The position numbers and the translations under genes are program-made. Positions 2,158-16,232 of a stretch of 64,000 nt of DNA are shown one piece after another. Origin of the DNA: Piromyces finnis finn (lineage: Eukaryota > Fungi > Neocallimastigomycota); NCBI GenBank assembly GCA_002104945.1, contig MCFH01000025.1:124001-188000 (forward strand), written 5' to 3'. The first letter of the stretch is position 1, and each line of letters begins with the position of its first letter. The notes below the pieces were generated by a model. That model did not search any database, had not been told where the DNA came from, and saw only the letters and a list, made by a program, of their open reading frames with translations.

Positions 2158-2165
2158 AAATACAT

Positions 2166-2171
<6 letters not shown>
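2158..2171. repeat. Target-site duplication of element A, left copy (right copy at 13814-13827)
   Basis: AAATACATTTATA(T) directly abuts the poly(T) and recurs directly after the element 5' end. The last T is ambiguous with the tail. Confidence 0.9.
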
Positions 2172-2212
<41 letters not shown>

Positions 2213-2263
2213 CTAGGAAGAGAATACACATCTTTTATTTATTTACTTACTTAATTAGTGATA

Positions 2264-5200
2264 TTACATAATATTAGGTGATAATACATATTGATAATGA
2301 TATAATAAATAATAAATAAAAATATAAAAATAAAAAAATATAAAATAATTATTTAAGTTGCATAAAAGTTCAATGAACTCTGCAATTTGTACTGTGTGGG
2401 ATTGGTCCCTACCTAATAAATTAAATGAAATAAAAAAAAGAAGTAACATCAGGTATGATAGTGTGGTGTCCACTAAACTCTCCCATGAGTTCATAATGTT
2501 TTCATTCGAATTTGAGGAAATACTAACATTGAACCCTGTGTACGGAACATTGGAAATGTTCCTTTGCCATATCGGTACGACGTCGGCGCTCTTGATTACG
2601 TTAGGTGTCTTACTAAACCTATCAAAAAGTAGCTTCATAGAGCTACTAATGATAGGGATTGTTTTAGTAAGAAAAGCCGCGAGACCCTCTACATATGGAA
2701 CATGAGACCCCGATGAACTGTAAAGCTGTTCATTCAAATGTCTTTGTTCCGCCTTATCGATTTGTAGCTCATCATAAGCTAAAGTTCCACCAAGAAGGAA
2801 CGTAAAAATATAGTTATAAATTATTTTTCTTACTTCCGTTTCGGGGAGTAAGTATGTGATGAATTGATTCTTATATTTATTGTAAAAAAGGGTAAAAAGA
2901 TCGTCAAGAAAGCTAAGTGAAGAAGCTCTGTATTCAGAGAATGCAGAACATTCTAATATCCAATGGTAAAAAGATTGTTCGTCATATCCGCAACATGGAC
3001 AGACACGAGGGCAGTCAGGAGTAACTCTATTACTGGCAATAGCAATTCGGGTAGTATTTTCATAACCGCATCGAATACGAATAATCCAGGTAATTCCTAA
3101 ATTTAAGTGAGGTTTGTTGAGACCGATATGCATTAGGCGATTTGAATTAAGGAATTTGTTGTTAGTATATCTGAGGGCTTTACTTCCATTATTTAGGCTA
3201 CTATTATTCCAATAATATTCTCTAATATCTTTAGTACTTTTAATATTTATTTTCATAAGCTTCTTATGTAGTGAACAAGATTCTTTGGCCCAAGAGTAAT
3301 GAGACATGGGAGGAATAGATCGGACGAGATCTTTAATTATACAATTTGATTTTCTCCATTTAACAAAGCATTTCACTTGTTGCGCAGCACAAATACCTGA
3401 AAGGGTAGGAATCTTCATATCTCTTGTAAGAGCATACAGACTAATAAATGAATTTCGTTCAAAAACAAAATCTTTGTTATTAAAACTTTTATTGTGAAAG
3501 CTATTGACACTCCATAAAACAGCAGTATTGATAAGAGATTGGACTCTTCTAGTTCTATTTTTGTTGGAACCAAGCAAAGGAGCATAATAAGAGACTTTGC
3601 TTAAAATATAAGAATGAATTACTATGTTTTTTAAGCCAATAGGAACACAATTGTTGGTGAGGAAGTTCTTAAAAGAGAATAAAGAATTCTGAACTTTTTT
3701 GTACATATTAGACAGAATAGGAGTCAAAGAAAGATCTTCGTCGAATGGGATTCCAAGATAAGTATAGCAAGAAACCTTTGGAATCGAGTACATACCGATG
3801 TAAAATGTTGGGTCGACATAACTAGAGGATCTATTAAAGTTGATAGGTTTAACAACAATAGTTGCACATTTATTTATTCCAAAAGACATTTCATTTAAAT
3901 TAGCCCAATCAAGGACTAGATTGAGCATCTTTTGAAGGTTCTTCTTACTAGGAGCAATCAAAACAATGTCATCAGCGAAAAGGCCACCACAACAACGTTT
4001 ATTACCTAAGCTAACTCCAAGCCTTTCACATTTATTTAAAATATCATTGATAAAGAGGTTAAACAGTATAGGAGAAAGAGGACATCCTTGTCTTACACCA
4101 CGGTTTATAGGGAATCCATTGGAAAGCATATCCAAGAAACGTGCACGAGCTTTAGAGGTAGAGTAGAGATTATTGAGAAAATCAAAACATTTACCACGTA
4201 TACCTAATTTATATAACTTTGTAAGGATATTAAAAATAGGAACTGAGTCGTATGCTTTTTTAAGGTCTAGAAAGGCGACATAAGTGGCTTTTCCTTTAAA
4301 TTTCCTTCTTTGATAGATTTCTCTAATGGAAATAAATAAGCTAATACATTCTTCTTTATTGCGAAAACCAAATTGCTCAGGTCTTATAAAATTATGTGAA
4401 AGAGCATACTTTGAAATTCTATTAGTTACAATTTTTGAAATAATTTTAAGACCTACATTGATGAGAGAAATACCACGATAATTATTACAGTCTGAGAGAT
4501 CGCCTTTCTTTGGAATAGAAACAATGGAAGTAGAGTTTCATTTCAAAGGAAAGGAACCATTCCAGATTTTATTAAAAATTAATTTAAGACAATTTCCAGC
4601 AGACTTATGTTCTTTCTCCAGTTCTTCGTTACAAAAGAAAGCTTTGAAAAATTCAATTGGGATACCATCGGGACCTGGAGCCTTGTTATTCTTCATTGAC
4701 AGAACAACATTTCTAATTTCCTCAATAGAAATGGGACCATTTATATCCCATGCTATTTGGTTGATATGGTTGAATTGGAAGGCTCTTTCCCAGTAACCAC
4801 GATTTAAGCTGTGATTTGTAACATCAGATGCAAGATTTTCATAATGTTCAGCCCAACGTTTTAATTGTTCTTGAGGAGTAAATAAATCCTTGCCATTCTT
4901 GTCCTTAATAGTTGAAACATGGGAGGACGAATAACTTGGTTTGGCAAGTTTTTTAAGGCCTTTCCAACCTTGTCTAAAGCTTTTATCAATAAAATGTTTA
5001 CCGATAGAAACAATATTAGCTTTATAGAGATTGGATCTGAATTTGCTCTTAACCTTTTTGATGGTATTACATAGATTTTGGTATATGGAGAACTGGTTAA
5101 GATAATTTTCCATGTCAGCGCAATCTGAAAGGGGCTTAATATTTTTGTAAGCCAGGTGTTTTTCATGTGATAAGTTTTTGATGTATTGAGGGCAATGGAA

Positions 5201-6538
5201 TGCTGGACCTTTTAAATCTGCGGGCACAATGGCTTTTATTTCTTTACCTATAGTTTTGGAAGTATCTAAAAATCTTGAAACCATATCGTCAGCCGAAAGG
5301 CTATCACAATTAGCTTCAAGCTCGGAAGCTAGAACAGCAAAGCGATTACTAGTAAGAATGTCAGAACACTTTGTGTTACAGATATGACTTGACCACTTAA
5401 AGGTCTTCTTAGGCTTTTTGAGACCATCCGAAGAGTCTTTTTTACAAGACACAAGGATCGGTTTGTGATCAGAAACATCGTGGAAAACTTCACAAACTGA
5501 AGATTTGTTTATGTGTTCTGTCATAGCTTTGTTGTATATAATATGATCAATGCATGAAGATTTAGATCCTTTTTCCCAGGTAAAATTATTACCAGTTAAC
5601 TCAGCCATAGTCCAATCCGGGAAGTGTTGTGATATATAAGATTTGATTTTAATAGCTGACATATTAAAGTCTCCTACAAGGATAGCTGGGTGGTTGAATT
5701 TGTTATGCGTTGTTAACCACTTATCAAGTTCATCAAAGGCAATTAATCTAGCATCCGGCCATCTAGTTTGCGGGAAGTAAATATTACCAATGGTACATCT
5801 CTGGTTCCAAAATGACAATATTGTAACTGAAATGATGTACTTATATAGAAGAGGTTCAGGAGTAAAGGAACAAGAATTATGAACACCAATGTAAAGTCCT
5901 CTCATACCTGGAACTTTAGGATTAGCACGTCTGTGTACTGGTTTATAGTTCGGTAGGCATGGGGAGGAAATCGCATTACCACAGAGGAATTGGCTGTTAC
6001 CTACTTCTTGAAGACAGACACATACAGGTTTGAAAACAGAGATGAAGTATAAAACACCGTCCTTTTTCTCCGGGTTCCAACCATTGATGTTCCAACAAGT
6101 ACATAAGTTGAAAAAGGAAGCATTAGAGCTTAGATGACTAAAATAGAAATCGTCAGAGAGTGGACCAGTAGTAGATTTGATAGATCGTTTGTTTTTGTAT
6201 GATCTATTGTTTTTGAGCTTATCAATGAATTTCCAAGATATTTTACTAGAGATTGGGAGTTTTTCAGAAAGTGAGTGTATAAGTAACATGGCTTTAAGCG
6301 GACATTTTCCATTGACTTTAAGAATGAAATAGATACTGAGTGATTGTGAATATTTTTTGGTGAGGGATTGAAGAATATCATTGAAAGGTTGAATGTCCTT
6401 TAAAAGAAATTCCATTAGTCGTTGTTTTGACCATGAACTAAGATCATGGATAAAAATTAGATATGATTTATTGGAGTTAGATCCGAAGAAACGAAGACTA
6501 CGTCGTAAGGTAGGTACAGTACAATTGGTATTGTTCAT
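2264..6538 (-). pseudogene. Element A single polyprotein ORF (RRM-like, APE endonuclease, reverse transcriptase, CCHC finger); 1425 codons with one in-frame TGA at 4538-4540
   Basis: Track ORFs 4538..6538 and 2264..4135 are in the same frame. I translated 4537-4136 by hand with no stop (NSTSIVSIPKKGDLSDCNNYRGISL...AFLDLKKAYDSVP). Motifs: APE WNING, CLQE, GDFN, SCIDH, SDHKP; RT GVRQGCPLSP and FADD; CPCC...HWILEC. Confidence 0.92.
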
Positions 6539-7767
6539 TTTGAAAGAACTTATTATGACAATAGATATTAATAGTTTGAAGTATTGATATAATGATATAA
6601 ATAAGATAATGAAATAAAATATATAGTAAAATAAAAATAATAATAGTAAAGACGGATATAATATATAGCAAGTGGATTATTTGTCAAACAATATTTTAAA
6701 TTTATAACTGGAAAAGTGGCTAAGTTGTTGACAAACTTAGTTCTAACTCTACTGAAGACTTTAAACGGAAAGATAAATTTTGAATATCTATCACTTTGGA
6801 TTTCTGTATTATAACTGTATTTTGAAAGCTCTTTATATTAATAAGAATTGTATAATTTATTGGATGATAATTGAATTGTGTTGATTCTGATTGTTGAAAT
6901 TGAACATTCATATAGGTTGTTTATGTTGTAAGGTAGAGAGATAATAAGAGTGAAAAGTTGTTATATCAAAAATAATGGAAAAAAGTTGAAGAATTTTGGG
7001 TAAACATAATAAAATTTTTTTTTTTTTTTAAAGATAAAATTGAAACAAGAGTAGTATTTACAATATAAAAATAGAATACTCGATTTTCCAGGATAGAAGC
7101 TTTGATAATAGAAATGTTAAAGAAAAAAAGGTGTTAATACTTACCATAATAGTCCATAATAAACCTACTTAAGTTATACAGATATATAAATATACATATA
7201 ATATAAAGTATAAGAAATATATATATATAGAAAAGAGATAGAAAAAGTATACAAAAGAATGTTAGTAGAAAAGAGATTCCTTGGAAAATCTAGAGTTACA
7301 AAAAAATAAGAAATAAAAAAAGATATTACTAGAATCATATAAAATCATAAAGGAAAAATAAAAAAGCCGCGCCCCTCGAAAATAATAAAAATAGAAAAAA
7401 TAAAAGATTAAATATGATTATAGTAATGAAAGCTGCACCCCACACGAAACTCAAGAATAAATGAAAGGAATAACCAACTAACTGAAAAAACAAAACTATC
7501 TGACTAATCAACATATAAAGAATAAAAAAGGAATAAAAGAACAAAGAGAATAAGTAGTAAACTGGGATAACAAATTATCGATGAAAGCTAAAATAAAAAT
7601 GAAATCAAGAAATATTCAAAATCAGTATTTAATACTACCGAATCAAACAATTTTAAGTTTAAAATAATATGTTATAAAAGTTGTTAAAGCAACTACTATC
7701 TAGAAAATAAGTTGAAGGTGTAAGGGATATATGATATAACAACTAACACTCAAATTATCAACTCTGT

Positions 7768-8008
7768 TCGCTCAGTACCATGAGCTTAGTCCTAATAATA
7801 TTTCCAAATAAAGACTAACCAAGTATCCATTGCGCAATACTTGGATTTAATTCTTCCTACTCTCTCAGTACCATGAGCATGAGTAGACCCCCTTGAGAAA
7901 CTACATTTATTAAATAAATGAAGGCACGTACCCAAGAGGGCACCAAGCATCCATTGCGCAATACTTGGATTTAATTCTTTCTACTCTCTCAGTACCATGA
8001 GCATGAGT

Positions 8009-8011
<3 letters not shown>
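7768..8011 (-). repeat. Element A 5' structured module (units A-B-C-B in plus-strand order; the last C unit is displaced to 13761-13813)
   Basis: Two B units (CCAAGYATCCATTGCGCAATACTTGG...CTCAGTACCATGAGCATGAGTAG) at 7819 and 7943, a 124-nt period. Near-identical to 13422-13715. Confidence 0.88.
8000..8011. repeat. Target-site duplication of element B, left copy (right copy at 13749-13760)
   Basis: AGCATGAGTAGA abuts B's poly(T) at 8012 and recurs at 13749-13760, after which element A's interrupted C unit resumes. Confidence 0.9.
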
Positions 8012-8053
<42 letters not shown>

Positions 8054-8287
8054 GGCATCAAATATTTTAAACTTTATTATTAATTTAATTAAAATTATAA
8101 TACATGTAATAAAAAATTAAAAATAAATAAAAATAAAAAAAATATGTTTAAATAAACACAAATGAATAAAAATTGGGTATAATGTATTCTAGTAATTTTA
8201 ATTAAAGTAAGAAAGCCACTATCATACTAAAGTATAATAATTGTATTTGACTTCCAATGGGACACCGAGCCAAAGATCAAAATTTTG

Positions 8288-11200
8288 TCATGGAACAAAA
8301 TTATGATCTCCATTGGTTGCGCTGGCCCTCCTGGCCTGTCTTACTGTTTCTTCAGCATTGACGCTCTTGGATGTTGCTTCAAACCTTTTGAACATTGACC
8401 ATTGCTGGCCAATAGCAAAAGGCATGATTTTGGTTAGAAGTTCCGCGGTTACCGTCAAGAATGGTGCTCCTTCATTAGTACCAGATTGAATCTGACGCTT
8501 ACAAAGTTCTTTCCATTCCCTTGAATTGTAATTAATATTGTTAAAACTTCTTCCCCCAAGAAGGAATTTAAATATTTTACTGCACACACTAGAATAATCA
8601 TACACATTAATATTCACCGGATTATTAGAACTATTACTATCATTAACTAAATTACTATCTAAATTAGAATTATTATCTTCACTATTGCTATCATTATTAA
8701 TATTATTATTTCTATTACTACTATTGTTATTATTACTATTTCTATTATTACTATTACTACTATTGTTATTATTACTATTGTTATTATTATTATTGTTACT
8801 ATTACTATTACTGTTATTGCTATCTCTACTGACATTATCAATTTCATTATTATTGATAGGACTATTGGAATTACGTTGACTGAAAAAATTTAATAGCTGG
8901 ACTATGGAATCATAATGTTTAATACGGATATCTCTAAATGTTGGACAATCTAATAACCAATGTTTAATACTTTGAACACCACACTTGCAACATGGACAGT
9001 AGTTAGGACAAACTGGATCAACAAATTTAGCAGCTTTGGCAACTCTAGCATCCAACTTGGATCCGCTTCTTGCTTTCAATAGCCAGTAGAAGCCATAGGC
9101 AAACTCTGGGTATTCATAACATAATTTGATAAAATCTTTAGTTTCACTAAATTTATTATCATCATAATATTGCGCTTTGATTGAATTCCCTTTGAGATCT
9201 TTCCAATAAAAGTTTTTAACTGCTTTAACATCTCCATGTTTCTTTAATTTTTTATCAAGTGTCCTACTTGATTTGCACCACGTGTATTTTCTAAATTTAG
9301 GAATGTAATTGACAAGGTGTGAGATAATAAAATTTGAGTTTTTCCATTTGTTAAAACATCTAACCTGAGCTAACGCACATTTGGCTGACAATGGAGGAAT
9401 ATTCAAATCTTTTGAAATAGAGTATAAAGATATAAACGATACAGCTTTATGAACTCCGGCAACCCATCGTATTCCTTTGTTAACATGCTTCTGAGCAATC
9501 CTAGACCTAGCTTTGTTGGATCCAAGTAATGGTGCAAAGTATGAAACTCTGCTAATCACTTGTGAGTTAAGTACTAGTTTTTTGAAAGGAATAGGAATAT
9601 TAGGATTTCTTAAGAATTTACTGACTGAGAAAAGCCCTTTCAAAACCTTGTTATTAAGAGCTTTAATTACTGGTTTAAGGGACAGATTCTTATCAAATGG
9701 AACACCAAGATAAGTATAGCAATCAGTAGTTGGAATGGGTTGTCCTGCTAAGTAAAATGTTGGATCTCTCTTGTTCTGATTTTCTATTGATTCAGGACGA
9801 ATCACCATCGTTGAACATTTCTGGATACCAAATTCCATTTCATTATACAATGCCCATTCATTAACTCTTCTAAGCATCTTTTTTAAGCATCCTCTTGTTG
9901 GAGCACAAATAACTATATCATCTGCAAAAAGTCCACCACAGCATCGAGTGTCACCTAAACTGACTCCTAGATCTTCGCACTCTCTAAATATATCATTAAT
10001 AAAGAGATTAAAGAGAATAGGAGAAAGAGGGCAACCTTGACGGACTCCTTTCTTCACATCAAAAGATTTCGAGAATTGTCCATCTAATTTGACATTAGCC
10101 TTAGATGTTAAATATAAATTTTTGATAAATTGTAGACTCTTACCTCGGATTCCTAAACAATCTAATTTATGGAGAATATTACCGATTGGGACTGAATCGT
10201 ATGCTTTCCTGAGATCTAAAAAGGCCAAATATGTCTCTTTATTATCTAATTGACGTCTACGGCATATTTCTTGGATTGAAATGAAAAGACTGATACTTTC
10301 TTCCTTTTTTCGAAAACCAAATTGTTCAGGTCTAATGAAATTATTCTTTAAACCATATTCTGAGATTCTAGTGGTGACAATTTTGGAAATCAACTTAATA
10401 CCATTATTGATAAGTGATATACCTCGATAGTTATCACAATCTGTCAAATCACCCTTCTTAGGAATAGAAACAATACTGGATTCATTCCATGAGTTGGGGA
10501 AATCTCCATCCCAAATACGGTTGAATAATTTAAGAATAAAATTTAAACCATGAGCATCATTATCTGAAGTAGTATTACCAGAAGAATTATTATCTGTAGC
10601 ATTATTAGAATCATTACTTGATGGAACTAATGCTTTGTAAAATTCAATTGGAATACCATCCGGACCTGATGCTTTATAATTTGGAGTAGTGAGGATAGCT
10701 GACTTGACTTCATCAATACTAATATCTTGGTTGATATCCCACTCATCAAGCATAGGAAGTGAAAAACGTTTATTCGTTGGTTCTTCATACCAATGCTCCA
10801 AATCAAGACTTACACCACTTGGGTCTGATGCAAGATTTTCGAAATGATCATGCCACACATCTAGTTGTTCTTCCGTAGCAACAACTAATTCTCCATTTTT
10901 ATTTTTAATTGGTTGAGCAATAAAGAAAGAATCTTTTCCAATTTTTGCAGTTTTCTTGATCCATTTCCAGGCCTTCTTAGGATTATGACTCTTCATATAC
11001 TCACATCCTGTTTTAATCCAATGAAGATATTCTTGCTTCCTAAATTCATTACATCTTTTGTGGATGTAATCAATGAGCTTACGGTAGATTTTAATTCTTT
11101 TAATAAATTCATCTATATCATAAATTCTTTCTTTTTTAAATCTCTTATACAACTTCATTTTGATTTTTTGAAGATTAAAAATTTGTTGTGAAATATGAAA

Positions 11201-12826
11201 TGAAGACTTTATAACATTATTTGCTGAAGTAATACTGAGCTCGTCTGCAATTGAAAAAGCAGTTGAAGTAAACTCTTTGGAAAGTTCATCTGTAGAAACA
11301 TTAGGATCGTTGAGTTTTGCTGAAAGTATTTGGAATTTATTATGACTGAGAATAGATTCCTTTTCCTCAATACATTTTAATCTATTCCATTTCATAATTT
11401 TCTTAGGAACATTAAAGTCATTAGAAAAATCTTCCATAGGAATAATTTTACCATTAATAAGAAGTGGCTTATGGTCTGATACAGGATAAAAATTATTTAT
11501 AAATGATCCTGAGTGAATAAGATCTTTCATCTTCAAATTGATAAGAGCATGGTCAATGTCGGAAGATTGTTCACCTCGAGTCCAAGAGATAGTAGACCCT
11601 CTAAGCGGAAGAATTTCCCAATCTCCTAATCCATTAGTTGATAACCAGTTGGATAATTTTACTTTAGACATATTAAAATCACCAACAAGAATCGATGGAT
11701 GGGATGAATGAGTTTGTAACCACAAGCGAACTTCTAACTTTGCATGATCAACATAGATGTTGTGATGACTATGAGGCATATAAACATTACCAATTGAGCA
11801 TTAGAATCTATTCCAGAGACTAAAAGTATAAATAGAAATAATATACTTTCCAGAGAAGTTTTCAAGTGAGGCTTGACATGAATTGTGAAAACCTAAATAT
11901 AAACCTCTCATTCCCGGAACTGATTCGTCAGCTTTCTTGAAAAAGTGTCTATAGTTTCGCAAAGTAACACGACAAGGATAATCTGTATTCGATCCAGAAC
12001 CATTACCAGTTTCTTGGAAACATAAAAATAATGGTTTGAAAATAGCTGTGAAATAGCTAATACTATCTCTCTTTTCGTGATTCCACCCATTGGTGTTCCA
12101 ACTAAGACAAAAAGAAAAGTTATCAGGCTTGTTGGATGAGGAAGAATCGTTGCTATTATTATTATTATTAAAGTCATCGTTATTAATGGATGATGCATCA
12201 GAGGAATAAGTAGAACTATTACTAGATGGCTGTGAAACTGAAGAACTATCAACTATTGAACTGTTATCAGAGTTGATAGAGCTATTAGAATTAATTGTTG
12301 AATGTTGAGATTGAAATTGTGTTTGCTGTAGATCTGGAATATTTTCATGATTGGAAACTTGTTGAAGATCTTGTTGAAGATCTAGTTGAAGATCGGATTG
12401 TTGATGAGATTGTTGAACTGATTGTTGAAATGATTGTTGAATAGAATGTTGATGTTTATTAGAAACTAAAATTTTACGTTTGAGAGTGGAAAAAGTGTAT
12501 TTGTGATTCCTTCTACTACGAGCTGAAAAGGAAATTGAGGTAACTGAAAGTTTCTTCTTTAACATGTGTAAGATTTTAATACAATCTTTCGATGAACCAT
12601 GAACCTTGACTAAGAAAAAGTGATCATTGAAAGTCTGAAAATATTTAACACTAATAACTGAATTAAATTTATCTTCTAGAATAACCTCGAGTTTTTCCCA
12701 TAGCATATTTACTGACCATGATCGAATACCACGGATAAAGAAGGAGCGAATATCATCTAAGGGGATACCATAAGACCGGGTACCACGTCTGATATAATTC
12801 TTGTCTTTAATATAAAGGACTGACAT
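8288..12826 (-). pseudogene. Element B single polyprotein ORF (RRM-like, Q/S/N linker, APE, RT, CCHC, Asn-rich insert); 1513 codons with one in-frame TAA at 11801-11803
   Basis: Track ORFs 11801..12826 and 8288..11779 are in frame and joined by W-N-R-F-stop-C-S-I-G-N-V-Y-M (A has WNQRCTIGNIYF). Motifs WNTNG, CFQE, GDFN, SDIDH, SDHKP, GVRQGCPLSP, FADD, CPCCKC...HWLLDC. Confidence 0.92.
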
Positions 12827-13421
12827 GATAATAAATTCTAATTAAAAATATTGAATATAAAATAAATACTAATAAAAATTATAAATATAACGTATATGGA
12901 AAAAAAAATCTGTCTCTCTCTCTCTTCTTAAAAGTACTGGATAGTACAAAAATTGTTACGATGCTTTGTTTAAAGTTTCTTTTTTTGAATTCTAGTTGTA
13001 AATTTTCTTTAAAAATTCTAGTTTTGGTTTGTTGTTAGTAAATTCGAATCGCTTTTTGACACTAAACTTGTTTGACTTTACTTTTCATTAAATATTTAAA
13101 TTGGTAAAAAATTTGAATCAAGAATGTCGACACCAGAAAGCTTGTGAATAGTATTTTTACATGATGTAGAGTGAATCAGTCTCTTACAAGAAACAATACA
13201 ACAATAGCTACATGAATATAAAAATACAATGCAAATGCTAAAGTTGACTACATTGGATTCTTACAAGAGAAGAGTAGTACTACATGAATACATGAATAAA
13301 AGAAAAAATACAGCAACAAAATGTATTACTCTTCTAATTAAATACTATACAAACTTACCTGAATATCAAACATTCAACTTATTCATCAAATACTTAATTC
13401 GATGAATAAAATGTTTTTTAA

Positions 13422-13715
13422 TCGCTCAGTACCATGAGCTTAGTCCTAATAATTTTCCCTTAAAGACTAACCAAGCATCCATTGCGCAATGCTTGGATTT
13501 AATTCTTTCTACTCTCTCAGTACCATGAGCATGAGTAGACCCCCTTGATAAACTCCATTATTAAATAAATGAAGGCACGTTCCTAAGAGGGCACCAAGCA
13601 TCCATTGCGCAATACTTGGATTTAATTCTTTCTACTCTCTCAGTACCATGAGCATGAGTAGACCCCCTTGAGAAACTACATTTATTAAATAAATGAAGGC
13701 ACGTTCCCAAGAGGG
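13422..13715 (-). repeat. Element B 5' structured module (units A-B-C-B-C in plus-strand order)
   Basis: B units at 13471 and 13594, a 123-nt period. Near-identical to element A's module; similarity stops abruptly at TCGCTCAG (13422 and 7768). Confidence 0.88.
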
Positions 13716-13748
13716 AATATGTCCCAAGAGGGTAACTGTAAAGCTGTT

Positions 13749-13760
13749 AGCATGAGTAGA
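13749..13760. repeat. Target-site duplication of element B, right copy
   Basis: AGCATGAGTAGA, identical to 8000-8011. Confidence 0.9.
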
Positions 13761-13813
13761 CCCCCTTGAGAAACTACATTTATTAAATAAATGAAGGCAC
13801 GTTCCCAAGAGGG

Positions 13814-13827
13814 AAATACATTTATAT
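13814..13827. repeat. Target-site duplication of element A, right copy
   Basis: AAATACATTTATAT, identical to 2158-2171. Confidence 0.9.
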
Positions 13828-14358
13828 ACAAAAAATTAAACATTAACAATAAAATTAACAATGAAATACACATTCAGGAAAAAAAAAAAAAAAGAATAAT
13901 TGGTTTATATTTGTTTTTTTTTTGTTTTTTTTTTGTTTTTTTGGGAAAATATATAAAGATTTTTATTAAGAAAAATGAATATAATAAAAAAAAATATACA
14001 TATAAATGATTTGAATAAAGAAAAAAAAAAAAGGATTTCCCTTTTCTTTCTATTTACATTCTTGTTTATATATATAGATTGATGTTATTTTTATATTAAT
14101 GATTTCAAAATATTATAATTATAATTATAACGATTTATATAAAATAAACTGTTTATTAATAAAATATTATAATTTTTTTTTTCTTATTTAATAAATTGCA
14201 TAAAACGGGAAAGTAGCAAATGAAAAAAAAATACTATGCTGATATATATATAGTTTTAATAAAGATAAAAAAAAACTATTTATAATAGTGTATTATAATG
14301 AAAAGTATTGATTTTAAATTTTACTAAATCCAATGATTTATGAAAAATAAGAAATAAT

Positions 14359-16232
14359 TTAATCAGCCTTTTCTGGGGATCTAGATGGTTGACGATCATC
14401 ACCATCACGTGGAGAGTTAATTGGTCTTTCTGGTGACTTAGAAACAGATGGTGAACGGCTACGAGAACGAGAGCGAGAGCGGGTTGGAGAACGAGAACGA
14501 GATTGAGAACGGTTATCATTACGGTTGTTCTTATCATTGTAATTTTGAGATGGAGAACGAGATCTAGATTGGTCTCTAATAGAGTTGGATCTGGATCTGG
14601 ATCTAGATCTGGATCTGGTTCTGGATCTAGTTCTAGATCTAAAAGATCTGGATCTGGATCTAGTTCTAGATCTGGATCTTCTAGAGGATCTATCAGATCT
14701 TCTTGGTGAGTATCTTCTGTCTCTGGAGTAACTTCTCTTTCTAGATCTAGTTCTAGATCTAGATCTACTTCTACTATATCTACGACTGTTGTAACGTCTT
14801 GAACCCTATATTTTAAATATTATTCATTTAATTAATAAAATACATCGATAAAATATTATTAATAATAATTAGAAAGATTATTTAAGCATACATCTCTTAA
14901 GGTAATCTTTTGACCCTTTAATTCATAACCATCAAGTTTATGAAGAGCTTCTTTAACATCATCGTATGAAGAGAATTCAACAATACTATAAATAACAAGA
15001 ATAATAATTAATAAAAAATAATTACTCTATGTTTCATAATTTAAAAAAACAAAAAGAAAAATAAATGAATGTATTCCTTAAATACATACCCTTCTCCTTC
15101 ACGTCTTTTGTGAGCATCAGCAAAAGTAACTTGACCAGCTCTTCTAAAGAAGTCTTTTAAATCCTACATACGAAAAAAAAATTATTAATCTATTACATAT
15201 TTTTAATTTTATAATTACTTTAATACTTACTTGCCAGCTAACACTTTGAGCAATGTTTTCAACATAAATTCTATTATCAGTTCTTTGTGGTGCATTGTTG
15301 TTACGTCTATTAATTAAATAGTAAAAAGAATTACTACTTTATTCACCTCTAACTTAATTTAACTTTTATATTCAATGAATTTAAAATAAAATGAATTACC
15401 TATCATAATCACCACCTCTTCTATCATTGTATCTTCCTCTTCTTCTTTCACCCTTGGCAATTTCAACAATAATTCTTTAATTTTTTACAATAAAAATTAA
15501 ATTTTTTAGTTATGCTTTTTATACCTATTTAATTTTTTTAATATTTCCAAAACAATCATCTTTAACATATATACCTATGACCAAAGAATTCTCTATCGTT
15601 GCTTTCTTTTACGGCATCTTCAGCATCACGATAATCTTTAAATTCCTAGAAGAGAGAATATTTAATTACTAAGGACGTTCTCATTTCTTGAATTATTTTT
15701 TTTATTAATTAAAACATTTTAGCACTAAAACCACTAAAACCACTAAACCACAACCATTTTTAAACCATTATAATTCTTTTTGTAACAAAAATAAGTAGTT
15801 TGTTTCTATCTAAGTAGTTTTATTTAGGAAAAACAGTAATAGAAAACAGAAAAGAAGAATAACCAAATAAATTAACTAACCACAAAGCCAAAACCTATAT
15901 TAATTTTAATTATTTAACACAATAAAAAGTTATTATATTGAAAATATTTTATTATTATAATTAGTTTAAAATATAACAATCAAGATAATTAATAATAAAA
16001 TTAATAATTACCATTCTTTAAATTGATTTCTCTAATATCTCCATATTCTTTGAAAAACTATTTGTTTTATATTTATAAATAAAAATGTTTTTAATTTAGT
16101 AAATATGATAATCTATTTAAATTATTACATATAATAAAATGCTTGTTTATAAAATATCTAAAATACCTTTTCAACATCTCTCTTTTCAGCTCTACTAGAG
16201 AGACGACCAATATAAATTCTTGATCCGGACAT
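14359..16232 (-). CDS. Serine/arginine-rich splicing factor, SRSF4/5/6 family (RRM, RRMH, RS domain), multi-exon
   Basis: Spliced read: [22 protein letters not shown]|[16 protein letters not shown]|FGFV|[12 protein letters not shown]...[14 protein letters not shown]|[18 protein letters not shown]...RSRSRS...SPEKAD*. SWQDLKD motif and GT-AG introns. ATG at 16232, TAA at 14359-14361. Confidence 0.93.

Follow-up and report, generated by a model that had tools for sequence, protein, structure and literature searches.

The 64,000-nt stretch of contig MCFH01000025.1 (assembly GCA_002104945.1) of the anaerobic gut fungus Piromyces finnis studied here (hereafter the window, to which all positions refer) contains two long interspersed nuclear elements (LINEs), A and B. 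Both lie on the minus strand, B being nested in the same orientation within the 5' leader of A, and both carry at their 5' end a near-identical module of about 295 nt, the subject of this work. Each element has a reverse transcriptase (RT), an apurinic-type endonuclease N-terminal to it, a 3' poly(A) and a target-site duplication (TSD) around the whole unit, as L1-like LINEs of the apurinic-endonuclease (APE) type do. Pfam recognised RVT_1 in A (6e-17) and in B (8e-36), and Exo_endo_phos in A (9e-12); the endonuclease of B remained below the Pfam threshold, but B aligns to A over this region and its homologues carry PF03372. Among solved proteins, the best relative was human L1 ORF2p (2e-33), ahead of R2 (8e-19). 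Each open reading frame (ORF) is interrupted by a single in-frame stop codon. As nearly all of the DNA and RNA read depth differs from this copy at position 11803, the stop of B is a private nonsense change, and the family encodes a single ORF of ~1500 aa rather than an ORF1 and an ORF2. The stop codon of A lies outside the span covered by reads.

To compare the two modules, that of A, which is split by the insertion of B, was rebuilt by joining 13813-13761 to 8011-7768 (297 nt) and aligned with that of B (13715-13422, 294 nt). The modules are 95.6% identical; their first 131 nt are the same, and all of the differences (10 substitutions and 3 indel positions) are confined to the last 166 nt. 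The mismatches are skewed to the proximal unit, as would be expected if the terminal unit were the functional one, although the skew may have other causes, and the A-unit carries a few family-specific differences. Similarity stops abruptly after ...GGTACTGAGCGA (TCGCTCAG on the plus strand). Outside the module, the nucleotide alignment of A and B is limited to 69.7% identity over 674 nt of the RT region plus short patches, and the proteins are 43.6% identical over 1115 aa. Repeat finding resolved each module into two tandem units of 123–124 nt and a 49-nt partial unit; the units of this repeat family, D2, are 123 nt long and occupy 7818-7940, 7942-8064 (partial), 13470-13592, 13593-13715 and 13691-13813. 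A 15-mer of the module core, CTCAGTACCATGAGC, occurs six times in the window, always in the two modules, for 0.01 occurrence expected by chance, and no stand-alone copy of the module is present within the window. The GC content of the module is 40%, versus 21% for the genome and the window. These data bear out the repeat positions and layout, the near-identity over ~295 nt and the abrupt end that had been proposed in an original prediction made from the sequence. The identical 5' stretch was there given as ~54 nt, which is too short, and the common start that it assigned to both elements holds for A, which begins exactly at CCCTCTTGGGAAC directly after its TSD, but not for B, in which 33 nt precede this motif. 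The reverse transcriptases, with 70% nucleotide and 44% amino-acid identity, are not near-identical. The features of the two elements are listed in Table 1.

Table 1. Features of LINEs A and B in the window (UTR, untranslated region; H1, H2 and H3 are the hairpins described in the text).
Feature	Position	Strand	Basis or remark
LINE A, main part	2171-8011	-	ORF list, frame analysis, Pfam, T-run on plus strand
A poly(A), 40 nt	2171-2210	-	T-run on plus strand
A open frame	2267-6538	-	One in-frame TGA at 4538-4540
A unique 5'UTR (~1.2 kb)	6539-7767	-	Ends at junction 7767/7768
A module, proximal 244 nt	7768-8011	-	Rest of distal unit (H2, H3), full proximal unit, A-unit at junction
A module, 5'-terminal 53 nt (H1)	13761-13813	-	Split off by B insertion; abuts upstream TSD of A
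A TSD, 3' side, AAATACATTTATA	2158-2170	.	Exact 13-nt match to 13814-13826
A TSD, 5' side, AAATACATTTATA	13814-13826	.	Directly upstream of first base of module
LINE B, full length	8012-13748	-	Nested in module of A
B poly(A), 41 nt	8012-8052	-	
B open frame	8291-12826	-	One in-frame TAA at 11801-11803, private to this copy
B unique 5'UTR, 595 nt	12827-13421	-	
B module, 294 nt	13422-13715	-	Distal unit, proximal unit, then A-unit
B distal unit, H1	13663-13715	-	
B distal unit, H2 (UGGUAC loop)	13631-13662	-	
B distal unit, H3 (GCGCAAUG loop)	13594-13619	-	
B A-unit	13422-13470	-	Bears third UGGUAC hairpin
B extra 5' sequence, 33 nt	13716-13748	-	Holds partial second copy of first 11 nt of module
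B TSD, 3' side, AGCATGAGTAGA	8000-8011	.	Exact 12-nt match to 13749-13760; within H2 of distal unit of A
B TSD, 5' side, AGCATGAGTAGA	13749-13760	.	

The boundaries of the two insertions define what moved with each element. The probability of finding the 13-mer TSD of A at a given place by chance is ~1e-6, and the 53 nt that lie beyond B (13761-13813) resume the sequence interrupted at 8011 exactly as it continues in intact units. As the TSDs of both A and B enclose the modules, each module was mobilised with its element and does not represent flanking target DNA; on the same ground, the module was rejected as a site-specific target of these LINEs. The 33 additional nucleotides of B are a relic either of 5' transduction or of an end-jump by the reverse transcriptase. 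In this single case, the first-strand nick used by B maps to GTAGA/CCCCC (8000-8011 / 13761), inside H2/H1 of the leader of A, a GC-rich rather than a T-rich site.

We then turned to the copies of the two families represented in sequencing reads, using the contigs of four public runs placed on positions 7730-13729. The DNA run of the organism contributed 12,294 contigs that were placed on B, indicating that B is a very high-copy family. One RNA-run contig (X5 record 31; 627 nt, depth 1645) covers 12962-13584, that is, 460 nt of the unique leader of B and 163 nt of the module on either side of 13421/13422, with a depth of the same order as that over the ORF. It carries family-consensus variants where the copy in the window is the odd one out and hence derives from other B copies, so that the 5' end of B is not peculiar to the nested copy. 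Summed DNA depth also continues from the unique leader of B into the module, no large pile of loose ends is found at this junction among the matches listed, and joints at 13715 reveal further B copies whose 5' end is located exactly there. The junction of A (7767/7768) is crossed by several variant DNA contigs and by one RNA-run contig ~10% diverged from A. Taken together, these data indicate that the module is widespread in this genome, that other copies of both families have the same body-module junctions and that the arrangement is not that of a one-off recombinant. The depth over the module does not exceed that over the body in the DNA or in the RNA runs. One RNA-run contig extends to ~8 nt from the 5' end of a unit, contig ends not being transcription starts.

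Other features of the B family emerged from the same contigs. Read joints show B copies inserted into other B sequence. The summed DNA depth over B (8130-13729), which is not a copy number, is roughly flat from 3' to 5' (from 684k down to 340–480k), and this flat profile hints that a large share of B copies is full length, unlike in mammalian L1. Two runs labelled as other organisms (X13 and X14) contain 99%-identical pieces of the B ORF (window 8152-12676) at depths of 3–7 and no contigs over the 5'UTR and module of B (12730-13729); these matches correspond either to carry-over between samples or to a near-identical relative of B with another leader.

The closest database proteins are 62% identical to B and 75% identical to A, no member of the protein collection exceeding these values. 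They originate from metagenomes of the rumen and gut and from the gene sets of Orpinomyces and Piromyces, as befits elements of an anaerobic gut fungus. In a maximum-likelihood tree, 25 proteins fell into two clades, that of A and that of B, with supports of 100/100 and 100/99. The contigs of some of these relatives were examined for their 5' ends (that of L020 ends before reaching it). Two clade-B elements (L015 and L024, 59% identical to B) and two clade-A elements (L016 and L025, 65% identical to A) start, after unrelated flanks, with a common module of ~105 nt, which opens with (CT)CCCCTCCGGGG and is referred to as T2, the module of A and B being T1. T2 is 94–97% identical across the clades, with 97% between the clade-B element L015 and the clade-A element L025, whereas the proteins of the carriers are 39.7% identical across clades and their bodies align at only 68% over 566 nt. 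As each T2 junction recurs in a second, independent assembly, a chimeric origin is less likely. Both T2 protein clusters occur in a single assembly, GCA_016295205.1. By contrast with this sharing across clades, L026-L028, clade-A sisters of L016 (80% aa identity), bear a clearly diverged third version, T3, homology to L016 resuming further down the leader. Copies of the relatives differ from one another in the sequence that precedes the module. The module type is thus in conflict with the protein tree twice: T1 is present in A and B, and T2 in L016/L025 and L015/L024.

The leaders of these relatives contain further elements. In clade-B LINEs and in L018, unique 5'UTRs that cannot otherwise be aligned keep the motif UGUARGAGnnUGAUUCACUCYA (window ~13150-13180, corresponding to B sense 539-570; L015 ~690-720; L019 ~525-555; L018 ~1510-1540; L021 ~420-450; L024 ~295-325), which is absent from A, L016, L025 and L026. 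It could form a small hairpin (GAG...CUC) and constitute a second conserved element of the leader. In the clade-B relative L021 (positions 85-195; P0012), a tandem repeat of ~64 nt (GAAGAGGAATTCTGA...GGAGGGATGAATCTTC) occupies the place of the three-hairpin unit described below; leader turnover in the group therefore includes unrelated modules too. Clusters at ≥90% identity that contain fungal LINE ORFs (P0004, P0016 and P0028) also hold nr proteins from metagenome-assembled genomes (MAGs) of Methanobrevibacter sp. (MBR5953920.1, MBR5953921.1 and MBR5954469.1), and a protein from a Gammaproteobacteria MAG (MCR5564920.1) likewise clusters at ≥90% with these LINE ORFs. These prokaryotic-MAG proteins are mis-binned eukaryotic LINE contigs.

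On the sense strand, all of the module types (T1, T2 and T3) fold into three successive hairpins, H1-H2-H3. In H1, the very first CCC pairs with a GGG located 35–50 nt downstream and closes the 5' end. H2 is built in two tiers, and its loop of six bases contains (U)GGUAC. H3 has a stem of 7–9 bp and a loop that reads GCGCAAUG in T1 and T2 but GCAACG in T3. For both H2 and H3, the stem sequences of T1, T2 and T3 (and of T4 for H2) are unrelated, with all pairs canonical. A U-A to C-G double change separates the H3 stems of the proximal units of A and B, the distal units holding the U-G intermediate. The fold is specific to one strand: several stem pairs are G-U, and hence A-C mismatches on the opposite strand, and the sense folding energy is better than the antisense one by 8–14 kcal/mol (-43.4 vs -29.0, -34.1 vs -26.5 and -34.4 vs -22.8 kcal/mol), the antisense fold of T3 being no better than those of shuffled sequences. 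The covariation relies on three to four independent types, on single-sequence folds and on a register set by hand, as MAFFT/RNAalifold misaligned T1, T2 and T3 and returned a meaningless consensus. By eye, all versions open with a similar stretch of ~20 nt (CCC(C), a short loop and GGG(G)A, followed by CGU), including those of the more distant L018 and L019, which match each other at 88% over 25 nt. The module is thus a conserved, strand-specific three-hairpin RNA without an Rfam family: an Rfam cmscan of 7000-14500 (E≤10) returned only two chance hits (MIR2617 and SNORA32) and no ribozyme family, and ARAGORN found no relevant tRNA-like fold. Two candidate identities were rejected, a hepatitis delta virus (HDV)-like ribozyme (no Rfam ribozyme match, no P2 helix partner by eye and no evident nested double pseudoknot) and a trans-spliced leader (no splice-like junction, and a tandem leader of 300 nt). 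Pattern searches in other collections gave matches attributed to chance: the exact H2-core pattern had 14 matches in JGI metagenome contigs, all single 17–20-nt chance matches in GC-rich contigs, and two single matches in viral contigs, also taken as chance, while the T2 H3 pattern had none.

We consider it probable, at about 0.8, that the module is a LINE-borne 5' leader that has been exchanged repeatedly, as a cassette, between deep L1-like lineages. The original prediction of a swappable 5' cassette passed between lineages is therefore supported, and the comparison of module and RT trees that it called for, once run on the relatives, places T1 and T2 each in both protein clades. The ~295-nt module would form the 5'-terminal leader proper to each LINE and be transcribed and reverse-transcribed along with it, and the three-hairpin leader would be an old feature of a group of L1-like LINEs of anaerobic gut fungi, one that evolves apart from the body behind it. 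Its passage between clades A and B (~40–44% aa identity) would have occurred a minimum of one time in this genome and a further time in a related host, so that coexisting lineages would carry near-identical leaders and the same lineages in other hosts diverged versions. Because the clades of one host have stem sequences in common, although these change freely and differ from host to host, vertical conservation cannot explain the sharing, and we infer that whole leaders were transferred. As the A-unit has a few family-specific differences, the transfer would predate the present bursts, while being recent relative to the split of the clades.

The exchange may result from a switch of template by the RT between LINE RNAs expressed together, or from capture of a leader into which another LINE has inserted in the same orientation, exactly as B has into that of A; heteroduplex formation at the insertion site and DNA recombination are further candidate routes. 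B lies 64 nt downstream of the first base of A, in the same orientation, so that a transcript initiated at the 5' end of A would place the start of A's leader in front of B, which makes the arrangement a plausible intermediate. In addition, the 33 extra nucleotides of B, with their second partial module start, indicate that additional sequence is indeed placed ahead of the canonical 5' end. The leader would act as an internal promoter within tandem monomers and/or as a cis-acting RNA in the life cycle of the element, with transcription predicted to start at the first C of CCCTCTTGGG. The covarying, strand-specific fold points to a function at the RNA level on the LINE transcript; by analogy with mouse L1, the tandem monomers may also contain an internal promoter acting at the DNA level, and the two roles could coexist, as in the Pr77 sequence discussed below. 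A more far-reaching proposal, which we regard as possible but doubtful, is that the three-hairpin unit represents a novel class of RNA with a function in retrotransposons. At the 5' end, it would process itself or recruit proteins, as needed for full-length copying or for translation, and, being portable, it would sweep unrelated LINE lineages within each host because it must match a host or element factor. If so, it would be a case of concerted evolution of a non-coding module across transposon families.

Several points weigh against repeated exchange. Being 5.4 kb apart and in the same orientation, the modules of A and B may owe part of their identity, such as that over the 131 identical nt, to local gene conversion. 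The relatives are metagenome contigs, and the presence of the clade-A and clade-B T2 elements in one host is no more than likely, on the ground that both clusters occur in the same assembly. The read evidence consists of short assembler contigs among the matches listed, which sample the copies of this genome rather than count them, summed depth not being copy number. The first of these points can be extended into an explanation of its own, in which B (or A) acquired the leader of the other at this locus alone, the nested copies having recombined or undergone gene conversion, whereas the families as a rule have different 5' ends. The direct orientation and short distance of the modules would allow it, and the identical 131 nt, followed by ~92% identity in the rest, could be a conversion tract. 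However, an RNA-run contig derived from other copies of B spans the boundary of UTR and module, over which DNA depth also continues, the corresponding junction of A is crossed by several variant contigs, and sharing across clades is also seen on unlinked contigs from other assemblies; a one-off event is therefore very unlikely. Strict vertical descent, both lineages having kept the ancestral leader under very strong selection, agrees with the age of the three-hairpin architecture and of the loop motifs, which are conserved in both clades. Yet the stems are free to change and are wholly different between types while being identical between clades within T1 and within T2, and the sister clade-A elements L016 and L026 (80% aa identity) have diverged modules whereas the clade-B element L015 matches L025 at 97%, so that descent without exchange is very unlikely.

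In two further explanations, the module is not inherited with each element. In one of them, the module is added afresh, being copied onto cDNA ends from a separate abundant RNA, of the host or of a master element, by template jumping of the RT at the 5' end of the LINE RNA, a process that would homogenise all families within a host. Identity within a host and divergence between hosts, across clades, would follow from such a process, as would the tandem arrangement of the units and the second partial module start in the extra 5' nucleotides of B, which is expected from end-jumping. Against it, the body junction is fixed within each family, the differences in the A-unit are family-specific, the window holds no separate copy from which the module might be drawn, its depth in the DNA and RNA runs is no higher than that of the bodies, and neither Rfam nor tRNA searches yielded a match. 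Fresh addition thus appears very improbable. Still less can be said for the idea that the two LINEs are simply bordered by the module, as a repeat of the host or a specific target of insertion. The repetition of the module and the insertion of B into one copy would speak for it, but both TSD pairs lie outside the modules and the upstream sequence varies among the copies of the relatives, which leaves this explanation barely credible.

The transposons of the phylum of anaerobic gut fungi are almost undescribed, and our literature search retrieved neither a description of LINE leaders in this group nor a paper on its transposons. The acquisition and renewal of LINE 5' ends is known mainly from mammalian L1, which has a single active lineage at any given time. 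In P. finnis, two lineages that are as far apart as separate LINE families occur side by side, both represented in RNA-run contigs, with a common leader. In this natural setting, the unit of exchange, the sharp boundary where the structured region ends and candidate intermediates (the nested insertion in the same orientation and the extra 5' nucleotides) can be read directly from genomes. It follows for annotation that classing these LINEs by their 5' ends is misleading.

Foreign sequence is placed in front of LINE copies by L1 5' transduction and by RT template-switch chimeras, such as U6-L1, which are usually dead ends. The 33 extra nucleotides of B and its nesting downstream of the start of A are intermediates of the sort that such processes predict; however, in contrast to chimeric L1 dead ends, the chimeric form became here the master of a family. 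A and B have in common with monomer-type LINE promoters the tandem units at the 5' end. In mouse, where tandem monomer promoters are established, simultaneously active L1 families transfer their 5' termini (Sookdeo et al. 2013, PMC3600994), and DNA recombination, heteroduplex formation at the insertion site and RT strand switching have been proposed as mechanisms (PMC3600994). As with the mouse L1 5'UTR monomers of the A, Tf and Gf types, a tandem unit of ~100–200 nt is found at the 5' end of an L1-like element, and active families exchange 5' termini. However, the mouse families form a single L1 lineage and their ORFs are closely related, whereas the elements described here share ~44% protein identity and fall into separate, fully supported clades; in addition, their unit is a three-hairpin RNA with covarying stems, and the exchange is seen twice, with different module versions. 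Structured sequences at the extreme 5' end are also known from the trypanosomatid retroposons L1Tc, NARTc, ingi, SIDER and DIRE, in which Pr77 is both an internal promoter and an RNA element (PMC8190864, PMC3383444, PMC4035085). As with Pr77, distinct retroposon families within a host group begin with a common 5'-terminal sequence (T1 in A and B, T2 in both clades). Pr77, however, is 77 nt long, also acts as an HDV-like ribozyme and is confined to a single clade (ingi/L1Tc and non-autonomous derivatives), whereas the gut-fungal units are of 105–124 nt, often in tandem, and match no known ribozyme model, and their near-identity across clades points to recent transfer rather than shared descent. 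HDV-like ribozymes are located at the 5' ends of R2, RTE and L1Tc LINEs (PMC3185411), with which the present module would have in common a structured RNA starting at nucleotide +1 of the transcript. Compared with these systems, what is new is how deeply donor and recipient are split, the fact that the exchange recurs with different module versions, the three-hairpin RNA and the host group.

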